Source: Phaeosaccion multiseriatum
Lineage: Eukaryota; Protista; Ochrophyta, other classes
Direction: 5' to 3'
NCBI GenBank assembly: GCA_965112735.1
Contig: OZ218958.1
Location: forward strand, 2,604,001 to 2,668,000
DNA: 64,000 bases
Shown here: piece after piece, positions 51,827 through 59,955 of the stretch
Position numbering within the stretch: position 1 is the first letter of the stretch
Layout of the letters: each line of letters starts with the position of its first letter
Program-made: the position numbers and the translations under genes
The notes under the pieces: model-generated
Databases searched by the model: none
Told to the model about the DNA's origin: nothing
What the model saw: the letters and a program-made list of their open reading frames with translations, nothing else

Positions 51827-54800
51827 ATGGCCGGCACCGGCTGGACGCTCTTGGAGGCGCTAGACCACTGGGACTTCCACCAACCAACCAAAGCGCTCTT
51901 CACCTTTCTCAACGACGACGGCTCTGAGAAGGGCGAGTTAACCTACAGAGACGTCAATCAACGCTCTGCCGACCTCGCTGCCCATCTCGTCGCGCCCACT
52001 GATGCTGCAACAAGCGGCAGCAGCGGCAGCGGACTGGGCCTGAAGGCTGGGGATCGTTGCCTGCTGGTGTACCCTCCTTGCTTGGACTTTGTGGTTGCCT
52101 TCATCGCCTGCCTCCGAGCAGGGGTCGTGGCTGTGCCCGTCTTCCCGCCGGACCCGCGCCGACTCGCCAAGGACTTGGTCATGTTTCAGGCCATCGCCAC
52201 CAACAGTGGCGCCTCCATCGCTCTGACCAACACCGAGCACAACCATCACAAGAAGCTGGCAGACATCAAAGGCATCTTCTCCCTCCACTCGCTCTCCTCG
52301 ACCCTCCTTGGCGCCGCAGGAGGAGGAGGAGAAGGAGGGGCCGGCGTAGGGGGGCAGTGGCCCGACAGCCTCCGCTGGGTGGTGACGGACTCGCTTCTGC
52401 GAGGGAGCTCCTCCTCCGCGTCGACCGCCCCCGTGAGTAGCCTGCCCTCCCCGCCGGCCCTCACGGACCTGGCCTTCCTGCAGTACACAAGCGGGAGCAC
52501 TTCTGAACCGAAGGGTAAGTGCTCCGTCTTGCCCTGCTCTGTATTCTTTCATCCTCTCTCGCTCCCTCTCTCTCTGTGTGTATCTCTCTGTACCTCTCTG
52601 TCTGCATATCTTCTGTATCAAAGGAGAACAATAATAAAAGAGAAAGACACGAGCACCTGTCGTAGGCCTTACCCTCGAACCAACCAGTGAAGCAGAATCA
52701 TCACTACCTTCCTGCACCACCTTTGGCCTCACCCGACAAATACAATTACAAAGCTATCATACCTTACGCCCCACCCCATCCCACCCCACCCCTGTATCAC
52801 CAACACCCACACCAGGCGTGATGATCACTCACGGCAACCTTCGCCACAATCTCGAGCTCATCGTCACCACCCTCCGCGCCTCGCCAGAGACGGTGGTGGT
52901 GTCATGGCTGCCACAGTACCACGACATGGGTCTGATTGGGTCCTACCTCGGTACCCTCTACTGTGGCGGGAGGGGCTACTACTTGTCGCCTCTGGCCTTC
53001 ATCAAGCGGCCGCCGTTGTGGGTGCAGCTCATTAGCAAGTATCGAGGGACCCACATGCAGGCACCCAACTTTGCCTATGGCCTGGTGGTGAGTGAGTGAG
53101 TGAGTGAGTGAGTGAGTGAGTGAGTGAGTGAGTGAGTGAGTGAGTGAGTGAGTGAGTGAGTGAGTGAGTGAGTGAGTGAGTGAGTGAGTGAGTGAGTGAG
53201 TGAGTGAGTGAGTGAAGTGAGTGAGTGAGTGAGTGAGTGAGTGAGTGAGTCAGTGAAGTGAGTGAGTGAGTGAGTGAGTGAGTGAGTGAGTGAGTGAGTG
53301 AGTGAATGAGTGAGTGAGTGCGCGAGTGAGTGAGAGAGAGAGTGAGTGCGTAAGTGAGTGAGTGAGTGAGTGAGTGCGTAAGTGAGTGCGCGAGTGAGTG
53401 AGTGAGTGAGTGAGTGAGTGAGTCAGCGAGTCAGTGAGTGAGCGAGTGAGTGAGTGAGTGATCGAGTGAGCAAGTGAGTGAGTGAGTGAGTGAGTGAGTG
53501 AGTGAGTGAGTGAGTGAGTGAGTGAGTGAGTGAGTGAGTGAGTGAGTGAGTGAGTGAGTGAGTGAGCGAGTGAGTGAGTGAGTGATCGAGTGAGTGAGTG
53601 AGTGAGTGAGCGCGCAAGTGAGTGAGTGAGTGAGTGAGTGAGTGAGTGTGTGAGTGAGTAAGTGAGTGAGTAAGCGAGTGAGTGAGCGAGTGAGTGAGTG
53701 AGTGAGTTGGTGAGTAAGTGAGTGAGTGAGTGAGTGAGTGAGTGAGTGAGCAAGTGAGTGAGTGAGTGAGTGAGTGAGTGAGTGAGTGAGTGAGTGAGTG
53801 AGTGAGTGAGTGAGTGATTGAGTGATTGAGTGATTGAGTGAGTGAGTGAGTGAGTGAGTGCGTGAGTGAGTGAGTGAGTGAGCGCGCGAGTGAGTGACTG
53901 AGTGAGTGAGTGTGTGTGTGAGTGTGTTAGTGAGTGAGTAAGTGAGTGAGTGAGCGAGTGAGTGAGCGAGTGAGTGAGTGAGTGAGTGGGTGGGTGAGTG
54001 AGTGAGTGAGTGAATGAGTGAGTGAGCGAGTGAGTGAGTGATCGAGTGAGTAAGTGAGTGAGTGAGTGAGTGAGTGAGCGAGTGGGTGAGTGAGTGAGTG
54101 AGCAAGTGAGTGAGTGAGTGAATGAGTGAGTGAGTGAGTGAGTGAGTGAATGAGTGAGTGAGTGAGTGAGTGAGTGAGTGAGTGATCGAGTGAGTGGGTG
54201 AGTGAGTGAGTGAGTGAGTGAGCTGGTGAGTGAGTGAGTGAGTGAGTGAGTGAGTGAGTGAGCGCGCGAGTGAGTGAGTGAGTGAGTGAGTGAGTGAGTG
54301 AGCGAGTGAGTGAGTGAGTGAGTGAATGAGTGAGTGTGTGTGTGTGAGTCAGTGGGAGAGTGAGCGAGTGAGTGAGTGAGTGAGTGAGAGTGAGTGAGTG
54401 AGTGAGTGAGTGAGTGAGTGAGTGAGTGAGTGAGTGAGTGAGTGAGTGAGTGAGTGAGTGAGTGAGTGAGTGAGTGAGTGAGTGAGTGAGTGAGTGATTG
54501 AGTGAGTGAGTTAGTGAGTGAGTGTGTGAGTGAGTGAGCGAGTGAGTGAGTGAGTGGGTGAGTGAGTGAGTGAGTGTGTGTGAGTGAGTGAGTGAGTGAG
54601 CGAGTGAGTGAGTGAGTGAGTGATCGAGTGAGTGAGAGTGTGAGTGAGTGAGCGAGTGAGCGAGCGAGTGAGCGAGCGAGTGAGTGAGTGAGTGAGTGAG
54701 TGAGTGAGTGAGTGAGTGAGTGAGTGAGTGAGTGAGTGATCGAGTGAGTGAGTGAGTTGGTGAGTGAGTTGGTGAGTGAGTGAGTGGGTGAGTGAGTGAG

Positions 54801-56056
54801 TGAGTGATCGAGTGAGTGAGTGAGTTGGTGAGTGAGTGAGTGTGTGAGTGATCGATTGCTTGACCCCTTGGGAAGGGCGTATTTTCGATTCCGCACTTCC
54901 CTTACTCGATGTGCGGTAGCATAGGCATCATGTGCCGTTGGCGCCAAAGCAGAACGGAGGCCGTTGGATTGAGTTTGTACGAGGAGAGAGAGACCGAGCG
55001 AGCGAGTGTGTGTTAGGACGTGTGTGGTTCCATGTGAGAGAGGGAGAGGGGACGAGAGAGAGAGAGAGGAAGCGCGTGTGTGTGAGAGGAGTGAGAGAGG
55101 GAGAGGGAAACGAGAAAGGAGACGAGGGAGCTTCACTGGCTCAACTCCGTGTCTCTTCCGTCTGTCCGCCCCTGGCGTGTGCTTCCCTTCCATCCCACTC
55201 CTCTCCCGGGTCTCACTTTTTCCTCCCTCCCACCTCTATCCCCTTCCTCTGCCGCCCCCCCCCCCCCGCCATCCACTGCCATCCCCCCGGCCCTCCAGGC
55301 TCGAAAGTTCCTCGCCCTGCCCAGTACTGAGCAGCAGCTTGATCTGTCGTGTGTGCAACACATGATCAATGCCGCAGAGCCTGTGGAAGGACGCACCATT
55401 GACCGCTTCCTCGCCACATTCGAGTCGCATGGCCTCAAGGTAACGTACACACTTAGTGGTTACGTAACCTTATGCAGCTACGGTCACCTCTCTCCATGCC
55501 TCGTCTCCCTCTTCCCTCTTCCCTCTTCCCTCTTTCTTCTTCCTTCTTCCTTCTTCCCTCTGTCCTCTTTCCTCTCCCGTCTTCCCTCTCCCTCTCCCTC
55601 TTCCTTCTTCCTCTCTCCCTCTCCCTCTTCCTTCTTCCTCTCCCTCTCTCTCCCTCTCCCTCTTTCCCTCCCTACAACTGCTCCGTCTCTTTACACGTGG
55701 CCTTCTTGGTCTTACGTTTTCCTTACTCGCCGCCTCTTCGCTGCCCTTCTGCGTGCGTCACTCGCGTGCGTACTTCCAGTCCAATACTGTGTTTCCTACG
55801 TACGGGCTTGCAGAGCACACCGTCTTTGTGTGTGGTAACGGCGAGGCTCGCATTGTGGTCAACCGAGGTTAGTGCCAGCTGTGAGTCGAGTAAGTCAGTG
55901 AGAGTGCGAGTGAGGGATGAGGGGGATGGGGGAGTGTGTGCATGCCTCTAACCCAACTCAACACACCCATTTCCCCCCTCTATTCTTTGCCCTCGCCCCT
56001 TCCTGAACTGTGGGAATCCACCGCTGCCCCGCACACGCACACACACACGCACACAC

Positions 56057-56092
<36 letters not shown>

Positions 56093-59604: not shown

Positions 59605-59638
<34 letters not shown>

Positions 59639-59955
59639 GCAAAGGAGCCACTGCAGTGACGGAGGCAATACGCCTGGCGGCAGCCCATGGAGCGGATCTC
59701 ATCCCCTGTAACGCCTTCCATGCCCGGGGCGCGAGGGAACAACAGCAGCAGCAGCAGCAGCCGCAGCAGGGGGGGGGGGGGGGGGAGAGCGGGTGCGAGT
59801 TGCCCCTCGTGACCGTTGCTTGTGGCAAGGCTCTTCGCCTTCCCCGCACGGCGGCCCTGCCTTTGAGCATGTTGAAGGAGTTTGAGGAGAGCGTTGAAGC
59901 AGCCCTGCGAGAGGTGCTCAGCCAGAACCAGGAGGGCTTTGAGCTGCTCCAGTAG
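51827..59955 (+). CDS. Fatty acyl-AMP ligase (FAAL) - acyl carrier protein - membrane DGAT2/MGAT-like fusion, ~1,294 aa, 8 exons
   Basis: Exons 51827-52514, 52816-53087, 55299-55439, 55780-55867, 56164-56313, 56902-57029, 57261-57824, 58102-59955 (3885 nt). FAAL motifs: LAFLQYTSGSTSEPKGVMITHGNL, SWLPQYHDMGLIG, APNFAY, PTYGLAEHT, GEVWLRSESCAKGYW, FLRTGDLGF, GRLKDLIIVRGRNHFPQDLE, VPKTTSGKIAR. ACP motif LGMDSM (Ser codon 58687-58689). Two hydrophobic helices, then a DAGAT-like C terminus. Confidence 0.88.
53088..54850 (+). repeat. ~1.75-kb (GAGT)n/(GTGA)n microsatellite filling most of FAAL intron 2
   Basis: Directly visible; begins exactly at the GT donor (53088). Confidence 0.97.

Follow-up and report, generated by a model that had tools for sequence, protein, structure and literature searches.

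Gene structure and domain organization

The 64,000-nt stretch of Phaeosaccion multiseriatum DNA analyzed here (contig OZ218958.1, positions 2,604,001 to 2,668,000; hereafter, the window) carries one gene of particular interest on the + strand at positions 51827–59955. We could confirm, at the level of the sequence, an intact eight-exon gene predicted to encode in one chain a fatty acyl-AMP ligase (FAAL), an acyl carrier protein (ACP) domain, a two-helix membrane hairpin, and a domain of about 225 amino acids (aa) of the diacylglycerol acyltransferase 2 (DGAT2) type. The surrounding DNA is GC-rich (about 58–63%), intron-bearing, and eukaryotic. After reading frames were joined across the region, every intron presented GT..AG borders and the spliced coding sequence (3858 nt) translated without internal stop into 1285 aa. 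Three related proteins serve for comparison throughout, i.e., P0002 (1049 aa), a complete open reading frame (ORF) on an intron-free 3286-nt Logan contig; P0003 (1053 aa), a complete MMETSP transcript ORF from the raphidophyte Chattonella subsalsa; and P0001 (395 aa), an NCBI gene model from the brown alga Choristocarpus tenellus that is cut by the end of its contig.

Exon 1 (51827–52514; aa 1–229, phase-1 end) carries the start codon and the N-terminal part of the FAAL up to motif A3 (YTSGSTSEPKG); it ends at a gtaagt donor, matches Pfam AMP-binding (E = 2e-21), and begins with an N-terminus that is conserved in P0002 and P0003. Exon 2 (52816–53087; aa 230–320), assigned from matches to Protein Data Bank (PDB) sequences and from the splice model, runs from SWLPQYHDMGL to PNFAYGLV and includes three putative pocket residues (W260 at 52905–52907, M267 at 52926–52928, and F315 at 53070–53072) and the FIKRPP helix segment. 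The splice model also places exon 3 (55299–55439; aa 321–367), which has NCBIfam matches of the FadD32 type; exon 4 (55780–55867; aa 368–396), in which motif A5 (YGLAEHT) is followed by the beginning of the FAAL-specific insertion; exon 5 (56164–56313; aa 397–446), which holds the remainder of this insertion, in agreement with the insertion length; and exon 6 (56902–57029; aa 447–489). Exon 7 (57261–57797; aa 490–668), for which the splice model offers an alternative donor at 57824, encodes a low-complexity insert of about 105 aa followed by motif A7 (TGDLG) and the A8/hinge motif (GRLKDLIIVRGRNHFPQDLE). Exon 8 (58102–59955; aa 669–1285 plus stop) is a single open frame of 617 uninterrupted codons that contains the end of the FAAL C-subdomain (with matches to that subdomain and motif A10, PKTTSGKIAR), a linker, the ACP, the transmembrane hairpin, and the DGAT2-like domain; this part of the fusion is therefore independent of splicing.

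The alignment of the window protein with P0002 and P0003 extends from the very N-terminus (MAGTGWTLLEALDHW vs. MAGSGRSLLEALDHW) to the C-terminus and has 0 gaps at seven of seven exon junctions, which confirms the gene model and favors the exon 7 donor at 57797 over that at 57824. Several low-complexity inserts set the window protein apart from these two relatives; the largest is the insert of about 105 aa in exon 7 (window positions 57300–57600), which is rich in Ser, Thr, and Ala (TTSISSS repeats and poly-Ala), lies between motifs A6 and A7, and has no counterpart in P0002 or P0003. A look-up of the sequencing runs that contain this DNA yielded four, all from one study and none recorded as RNA. 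The insert would speak for a gene-model artefact, with exons drawn from separate transcripts or an ORF that is partly noncoding; set against canonical splice sites, an intact frame, gap-free collinearity with two complete transcript-derived proteins, and the shared exon of ACP, hairpin, and C-terminal domain, such an artefact appears highly unlikely. The order FAAL, ACP, two membrane helices, and DGAT2-type domain in a single polypeptide, as proposed in a preliminary description of this locus made from the letters alone, is thus borne out by the spliced model, by exon 8, and by the collinear relatives. All peptide strings quoted in that description are found in the spliced product, i.e., SWLPQYHDMGLIG (aa 259–271), IIVRGRNHFPQDLE (aa 632–645), IVVNRELLEKE (across the exon 4/5 junction), GMDS (containing S864), LMRHFAFKV, LRRGRSVAL, AIRLAAAHGADLIPCNAF, and LVTVACGKALRLP. 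A plastid or secretory leader was considered and rejected, in agreement with the earlier statement that no plastid leader is evident; the protein opens with the FAAL core, as do the relatives, in which this N-terminus is conserved.

Intron 2 (53088–55298) contains about 2.2 kb of a near-perfect GTGA/GTGAGTGA-type repeat, with a GC skew of about +0.79 over 53–55 kb. The opposite strand of this intron presents a 647-codon "SLTH" open frame, which is surely not a gene.

Adenylation domain and ACP

The core adenylation motifs A3, A5, A7, A8, and A10, checked against the consensus sequences TSGSTxxPKG, YGxxE, TGD, GRxxD (hinge), and PKTxSGKIxR, are all intact in the spliced product, with A8 reading GRLKDLIIVRGRNH. 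Pfam AMP-binding matches exons 1 and 2. In both NCBIfam and the PDB, the highest-ranking entries for each exon were FAALs, including FadD32, FadD28, FadD23, PRK05850, PRK12476, PRK09192, EcFAAL (3PBK), LpFAAL (3KXW), and a polyketide synthase (PKS) loading FAAL (7R7E). For exon 2, 16 of 16 PDB matches at E ≤ 1e-5 were FAAL/FadD or other adenylation domains, with 3kxw, 7r7e, FadD23, and 3pbk as the best. The C-subdomain of the window adenylation domain also presented a weak match to Pfam AMP-dom_DIP2-like. The adenylation domain of P0002, which is 61% identical to that of the window protein, scored 275–378 bits over the full length of FAAL models as compared to at most about 134 bits on typical acyl-CoA ligase models, and its PDB matches ranked in the order 7r7e, 3kxw, FadD32, FadD23, and 3pbk, with FadD28 also among the best. 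None of the NCBIfam FAAL models, which are bacterial equivalogs, was matched at its curated cut-off.

Two further features point to FAAL character. At the site of the FAAL-specific insertion, the segment from YGLAEHT to GCGKP comprises 63 residues in the window protein and 60 residues in P0002 and P0003, as judged by length and alignment rather than by structure, and the insertion region of P0002 aligns over its full length to FAAL profiles. In addition, W260, M267, and F315 present a spacing (+7, +48) identical to that of W224, M231, and F279 in EcFAAL, and PLAFIKRP is located at the position of the FAAL-specific helix (EcFAAL T252–R258); the aligned FAAL structures share these W/M/F pocket residues. 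In EcFAAL, the bulky residues W224, M231, and F279 together with the FAAL-specific helix block the canonical CoA pocket (PMC8460268). We therefore classify the adenylation domain as a FAAL on the basis of its sequence, with a CoA pocket predicted to be blocked; the preliminary description, which had read FAAL rather than acyl-CoA synthetase character from the letters, agrees with the profile and PDB ranking, the insertion after YGLAEHT, and the pocket residues.

An ordinary acyl-CoA synthetase, with a C-terminal domain that uses acyl-CoA and a vestigial ACP, would be compatible with the difficulty of classifying ANL enzymes by sequence alone and with the failure of every NCBIfam FAAL model to reach its curated cut-off. 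We nevertheless consider it very improbable, given the advantage of more than 140 bits that FAAL models have over typical CoA-ligase models in P0002, the presence of both the insertion and the pocket-blocking residues, and the conservation of the ACP domain and its serine across all members.

The ACP (PP-binding) domain, located at 58603–58791 on the + strand (aa ~836–898), was identified with Pfam PF00550 (E = 1e-11; 45.3 bits, cut-off 20.8). The predicted phosphopantetheine-attachment residue, Ser864 in LGMDSM (58687–58689), is conserved in P0002 and P0003, in which the LGMDS motif of the window protein reads LGIDS; an ACP with an intact GMDS serine, as noted previously, is thus present. Characterized FAALs adenylate a fatty acid and then pass it to holo-ACP without CoA (PMC8460268, PMC11837247). 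By analogy with this biochemistry, loading of the ACP in the window protein is likely to be CoA-independent and to take place at a membrane.

Hairpin, fold, and descent of the C-terminal domain

Two hydrophobic helices predicted to form a hairpin are encoded at 59122–59271 on the + strand (aa ~1009–1058), directly before the globular domain; as the preliminary description had proposed, they are evident both in Kyte-Doolittle windows (up to 2.37) and as two long helices in an AlphaFold2 (AF2) model. The hairpin segment was also found in P0001, P0002, and P0003, and hence in all four proteins, and it resembles the hairpin of DGAT2. The globular domain that follows (59281–59952, + strand; aa ~1062–1285) was delimited by homology to P0002 and P0001 and by AF2 fold matches. 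No Pfam DAGAT match was obtained for the window C-terminus even at E ≤ 10, nor was any other Pfam, NCBIfam, or PDB sequence match; a PDB-sequence profile search with the family alignment yielded chance matches, none of them to the DGAT2 family.

Evidence for DGAT2 descent comes from the relatives. P0002 and P0003 pass the Pfam DAGAT model PF03982 (47.7 and 49.9 bits, cut-off 22; E 1e-12 to 3e-13) and present no match to PF01553 (PlsC/AGPAT type) at E ≤ 1, and the window C-terminus matches P0002 and P0001 with E = 3.9e-5 and E = 8.3e-9, respectively. The DAGAT profile is aligned in P0002 and P0003 only over positions 135–289, a span that comprises RxGF...GA.LVP...FG and, towards the C-terminus, the VGEPI..P block; HPHG belongs to the N-terminal half of the profile, which is unaligned. 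DGAT2 motifs described previously include YFP and RxGFx(K/R)xAxxxGxx(L/V)VPxxxFG(E/Q) (PMC5079557). In the region of the YFP motif, the window protein has HFAF where P0002 has YFNF, and AIRLAAAHGADLIPCNAF in the window protein retains AxxxGxxLxPxxxF without RxGF and FG(E/Q), while P0002 retains ..ASGASLVPCYGFG.

The AF2 model of the window domain, built from the four-sequence alignment, is of modest quality, with a mean predicted local distance difference test (pLDDT) score of 60 and 70–88 in the core. It matched DAGAT clusters of the ESM Atlas with TM-scores of 0.65–0.67 over 243–247 residues and, in the PDB, PlsC (Z 10.5; 177 residues, root-mean-square deviation 4.5), PatA (Z 9.3), plastid GPAT (Z 9.2), and LpxM and human GPAT1 (Z 7.5–7.7), while unrelated PDB entries presented Z scores of 6.3 or less. 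The model of P0002 (pLDDT 66) reached TM-scores of 0.72–0.74, with DAGAT clusters only, and Z scores of 10.2–10.6 with PlsC, PatA, and GPAT; language-model features pointed to DGAT2 likewise. The case is thus good that the C-terminal domain, as modelled, has an alpha/beta fold of the LPLAT superfamily derived from DGAT2, and the "echo of DAGAT motifs" noted in the preliminary description reflects real homology and an acyltransferase fold. Membership of the window copy in the DGAT2/MGAT family would follow from transitive homology only, as judged from the sequences. We class the protein as a FAAL-ACP didomain with a DGAT2-derived domain and not as a bona fide DGAT2, because the window copy presented neither a match to the family profile nor the catalytic motif when tested for both.

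State of the catalytic motifs and sequence divergence

The putative equivalent of HPHG lies at 59389–59412 on the + strand, where the window protein has R1098-G-A-S1101, with Ala at the position of the essential His and a further His (H1105) five residues after this Ala. This column was placed from the alignment of the four family members, from its position in both AF2 models (the end of the strand before the first core helix, where motif I is located in this fold), and from the spacing in DGAT2, rather than from an alignment to the DGAT2 profile. It was equated with HPHG because two members still have the Pro and another still has H-G, the four sequences being RGAS (window), APNS (P0002), IPNA (P0003), and VDHG (P0001). 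The distance from YF.F to this column (+22) is the same as that which we take to hold for mouse DGAT2, a correspondence that serves as a lead and not as a test. The third-position His is replaced by Ala in the window protein and by Asn in P0002 and P0003, and it is kept only in Choristocarpus; no His is invariant in the four proteins. The plant equivalent of HPHG is EPHS. HPHG is required in yeast and mouse DGAT2 (PMC5079557, PMC5650624), and in the stramenopile enzyme DGAT2C the His at the third position is essential while the first His is dispensable (PMC10686087). A scan of viral contigs for DGAT2 sequences with a degenerate DNA pattern for GAxLVPxxxFGE(N) returned 13 loci, which encode unrelated proteins without HPHG.

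A second altered site lies directly after the strand SVALAL, where the window protein presents a run of 14 Ser (59599–59640, + strand; aa 1168–1181; pLDDT below 50) at what is presumably the place of GGxxE, as we assume its position in DGAT2; the relatives are non-repetitive here. In P0002 and P0003, the residues at about 943–953 that align with GGxxE read GHPKHLNE and AHSKYPNE, respectively, and contain a conserved His right after a core strand that could serve as an alternative base there; the window protein has poly-Ser at this place. A Gln/Gly-rich low-complexity insert (59740–59784, + strand; aa ~1215–1229; pLDDT below 50) lies between two core strands and is absent from P0002 and P0003.

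Identity between the window protein and P0002 or P0003 is 61–62% in the N-terminal and 57–59% in the C-terminal part of the FAAL, 42–45% in the ACP, and 25–27% in the hairpin and C-terminal domain; the corresponding values for P0002 vs. P0003 are 76, 69, 74, and 55%. The hairpin and C-terminal domain, with the lowest identity, are therefore the least constrained part of the protein, especially in the lineage of the window species. Across the four proteins, 22 positions are invariant; among them are the G-R that directly follows the hairpin, the G.S that precedes the Ser run, the GA..PC of the strand corresponding to motif IV, and a P.T...E close to the end. In PlsC-type relatives, the HX4D motif has an Asp at the i+5 position, next to the catalytic His, which is the position that His1105 would occupy in the window protein.

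As judged from these residues, the canonical DGAT2 catalytic machinery looks lost in the window copy, and it is doubtful that the protein completes the transfer by itself through this chemistry. The preliminary description had proposed that fatty acid is channelled by the tethered ACP to a lipid acceptor. Domain order and fold speak for the part of that proposal that concerns the tethered arrangement, while a C-terminal domain performing plain DGAT2 chemistry with acyl-ACP is disfavored by RGAS at the putative HPHG column, the 14-Ser run at the presumed GGxxE, the missing DAGAT match, and the identity of 25–27% vs. 61%.

Relatives and distribution

The C-terminal 291 aa of the window protein were searched exhaustively with HMMER against 1.84 billion representative proteins, and only P0001 and P0002 were found (E values as given above); P0003 was added by a follow-up word search. 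The 7.7-kb contig of Choristocarpus contains, by tblastn, pieces of the FAAL C-subdomain, the ACP, and the C-terminal domain in matching order. The architecture is thus conserved in three other algae besides the window species, and with four members found the fusion is rare. A word-index protein search with the C-terminal part of the window protein gave no match, and one with a four-sequence profile gave only P0001 again, as its sequences have diverged too far to be seeded by 5-mers. Scans of viral contigs and metagenome contigs for further members produced pattern matches and no confirmed relative.

When genome contigs were scanned with the alignment of P0002 and P0003, the matches were three stand-alone FAALs from bacteria and no tri-domain fusion. 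One of these, on an Azospirillaceae contig (L004:3210-8606), encodes a protein 34% identical to P0002 and is located between a gene for a FeeM-type N-acyl amino acid synthase and genes for an ACP-aminotransferase fusion and a second aminotransferase; this locus resembles a small lipo-amino-acid or sphingoid-type cluster. Another, on a contig of a Parachlamydiales metagenome-assembled genome (L003:2529-8949), encodes a protein 33% identical to P0002 and is preceded by a 2-oxoacid dehydrogenase E2 gene and followed by two acyl-CoA-dehydrogenase-like genes.

Comparison with known systems

Like DGAT2/MGAT enzymes (PF03982), the window protein has an LPLAT-type alpha/beta domain with a two-helix hairpin on its N-terminal side; sequence similarity is found in the C-terminal half (in P0002 and P0003, profile positions 135–289), and the models present TM-scores of 0.65–0.74 to DAGAT clusters. 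The stramenopile sterol acyltransferase DGAT2C resembles the window domain in being fused to a large extra N-terminal module (PMC10686087). Unlike DGAT2, the window protein lacks the His of HPHG/EPHS, has poly-Ser in the putative GGxxE stretch, and is not recognized by Pfam; moreover, while the donor of DGAT2 is acyl-CoA, the donor here would be a covalently fused acyl-ACP. Full-text searches of an incomplete literature collection yielded no description of a FAAL-ACP fusion to any DGAT2.

The same order of adenylation domain, carrier, and LPLAT-superfamily acyltransferase in one chain is found in ElbD-like bacterial proteins such as Myxococcus xanthus ElbD (PMC9131029). The nearest feature-space neighbours of P0002 (score 0.96–0.97) are numerous bacterial clusters that combine AMP-binding and PP-binding with PF01553 or a lipid A acyltransferase domain, and a 2026 survey of FAALs describes FAALs with an LPAT_AGPAT_like domain in Actinomycetota, while eukaryotes are listed there only with FAAL-PKS or FAAL-nonribosomal peptide synthetase (NRPS) combinations (PMC12820801). 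The statement in the preliminary description that FAALs typically feed PKS or NRPS overlooks this large bacterial adenylation-ACP-acyltransferase class (PMC9131029, PMC12820801). For ElbD, the activating and ACP functions were shown in vitro, and acyltransferase activity was never detected; the protein was reported to be soluble, has no hairpin, contains an extra reductase-like domain, and serves ether-lipid synthesis (PMC9131029). The acyltransferase domain of the bacterial proteins is of the PlsC/AGPAT type (PF01553) and not of the DAGAT type; the nearest predicted structures of P0002 are all DAGAT clusters. No evidence of direct descent from ElbD-like proteins was obtained, the bacterial FAAL relatives retrieved being stand-alone proteins. 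The adenylation-ACP-LPLAT-type design is thus known from bacteria, and what sets the present protein apart is the eukaryotic host, the DGAT2-type domain with its hairpin, and the missing canonical His in three of the four members.

FadD32, FadD28, FadD23, EcFAAL (3PBK), LpFAAL (3KXW), and the olefin-synthase-type loading FAAL (7R7E) are the best matches along the whole window adenylation domain and share its motifs, insertion, and W/M/F residues; a directly following cognate ACP is a further common feature. Unlike these stand-alone and loading FAALs, the window protein is eukaryotic, intron-split, and interrupted by long low-complexity inserts, and its partner is a DGAT2-derived membrane domain instead of a PKS or NRPS module. 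Two further systems offer a likeness in logic only. In the FATP1-DGAT2 complex at the interface between endoplasmic reticulum (ER) and lipid droplet, an activating ANL enzyme is likewise physically coupled to DGAT2, but the coupling is non-covalent and FATP1 makes acyl-CoA (PMC3432760); DIP2, a FAAL-like diacylglycerol regulator, presents a similar coupling to diacylglycerol metabolism, but its FAAL-like domains are arranged in tandem, and it lacks both an ACP and a DGAT2 domain (PMC9342972).

Proposed mechanism and alternative explanations

The reading that we favor, with about even confidence, is that of a membrane-anchored FAAL-ACP loading unit in which acyl-ACP is not unloaded by classical HPHG chemistry. 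In the scheme that follows, we infer the bypass of CoA, the membrane and topology, the acceptor, and the catalyst of the last step. The FAAL domain would adenylate a free, probably long-chain, fatty acid, and the acyl group would then be moved to the 4′-phosphopantetheine of its own ACP (Ser864) and not to CoA. The DGAT2-type hairpin and the DGAT2-derived domain would keep the loading unit at a membrane, on its cytosolic side; from the topology of DGAT2, this membrane is likely that of the ER or of a lipid droplet. The C-terminal domain descends from a true DGAT2-type acyltransferase; its canonical catalytic His appears to have been lost in the window species, suggesting that the domain may now mainly be a module for membrane positioning and for the binding of lipids or a partner. 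Acyl-ACP could be unloaded in trans, with another acyltransferase as the partner, or within the C-terminal domain itself in a non-canonical way.

Several observations weigh against this loading-unit reading, beginning with the indirect placement of the HPHG column described above. A plain anchor would not need a folded domain of about 225 aa; four lineages have kept this domain, with 22 of its residues invariant, which points to a role in ligand binding or catalysis. With an ACP immediately preceding an acyltransferase fold, direct transfer is the simplest explanation. In addition, H-G is retained at the motif in Choristocarpus, and the location of His1105 at the position of the Asp of HX4D makes a relocated catalytic residue conceivable in the window protein.

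These observations bear on the best of the alternatives, a self-contained CoA-independent line in which the DGAT2-like domain itself would move the acyl group from the ACP to diacylglycerol, monoacylglycerol, a sterol, or a fatty alcohol by means of non-canonical residues, e.g., His1105. We regard this as possible but less probable than the loading unit. It would fit the conservation of the architecture in four algae, the acyltransferase fold with its hairpin, the H-G of Choristocarpus and the His at i+5 in the window protein, as well as the frequency of adenylation-ACP-acyltransferase fusions in bacteria (PMC12820801) and the ability of stramenopile DGAT2-like domains to switch acceptor, e.g., to sterols (PMC10686087). 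On the other hand, the essential His of HPHG has given way to Ala in the window protein and to Asn in P0002 and P0003, a Ser run takes the place of the putative GGxxE stretch, no base-capable residue is invariant at the motif, the C-terminal domain evolves fastest in the protein, and bacterial ElbD showed no acyltransferase activity in vitro (PMC9131029).

Decay of the C-terminal domain to a relic in the window lineage, leaving only FAAL-ACP and the hairpin functional, e.g., in feeding a PKS-type enzyme, appears improbable. The low identity of this region relative to the FAAL domain (25–27% vs. 61%), the Ser and Gln/Gly inserts within the fold, and the lack of a Pfam match in the window domain are what such decay would produce; however, the 290-codon region remains an open frame, the family fold is still predicted with a core pLDDT of 70–88, and the 22 invariant positions are shared with relatives separated at the class level.

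Between the loading unit and the self-contained line, a broader hypothesis may be put forward tentatively, i.e., that in some ochrophytes (raphidophytes, at least one brown alga, and the window species) a DGAT2-derived enzyme takes acyl groups from a fused, FAAL-made acyl-ACP, which would provide a CoA-independent route from free fatty acid to neutral or membrane lipid without the His of HPHG, a residue that has proved essential in every DGAT2 enzyme tested, by means of either relocated residues or a canonical partner acyltransferase.

Neighboring genes

The gene is flanked by three other coding regions. Upstream and divergent, on the − strand at 49440–51185, is a 581-codon Pro/Ala-rich ORF with three copies of a unit of about 35 aa (PPPLPTSRPGSMKSAEAPFPAAA...), repeated PPPIP(S/T)S, and an Ala-rich middle; an ORF that overlaps it on the + strand is probably its shadow. 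Downstream, on the − strand at 61272–62442, leucine-rich repeat (LRR)-like segments (LRVLRVSGNGIGRLP... and LEVLDVADNSLSMLPDSL...LRELDISG) are spread over two ORF pieces, which points to an LRR gene split by an intron. A 312-codon Cys-rich ORF on the + strand at 62658–63596 is hydrophobic at its start and in its C-terminal tail and contains a Ser/Thr/Pro-rich stalk; it looks like a secreted or glycosylphosphatidylinositol-type surface protein. A lipid gene cluster was considered and rejected, as none of these neighbors (the Pro/Ala-rich repeat gene, the LRR gene, and the Cys-rich ORF) is lipid-related.

Significance

To our knowledge, DGAT2 enzymes are considered to depend strictly on acyl-CoA, and most FAALs of eukaryotes are orphan enzymes. 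Should the C-terminal domain be only a degenerate anchor, the finding would be a modest point of annotation. The conserved protein in which FAAL and ACP are covalently joined to a DGAT2-derived domain is a concrete, testable candidate for acylating lipids independently of CoA at a membrane in eukaryotes, and its hosts belong to a group of algae studied for their oils. The family also represents a natural experiment on the DGAT2 active site, in which the fold was kept while the essential His was replaced in three of the four members known; the C-terminal domain may thus be either a new pseudoenzyme or docking module, or a case of DGAT2-fold catalysis rebuilt around a tethered donor.

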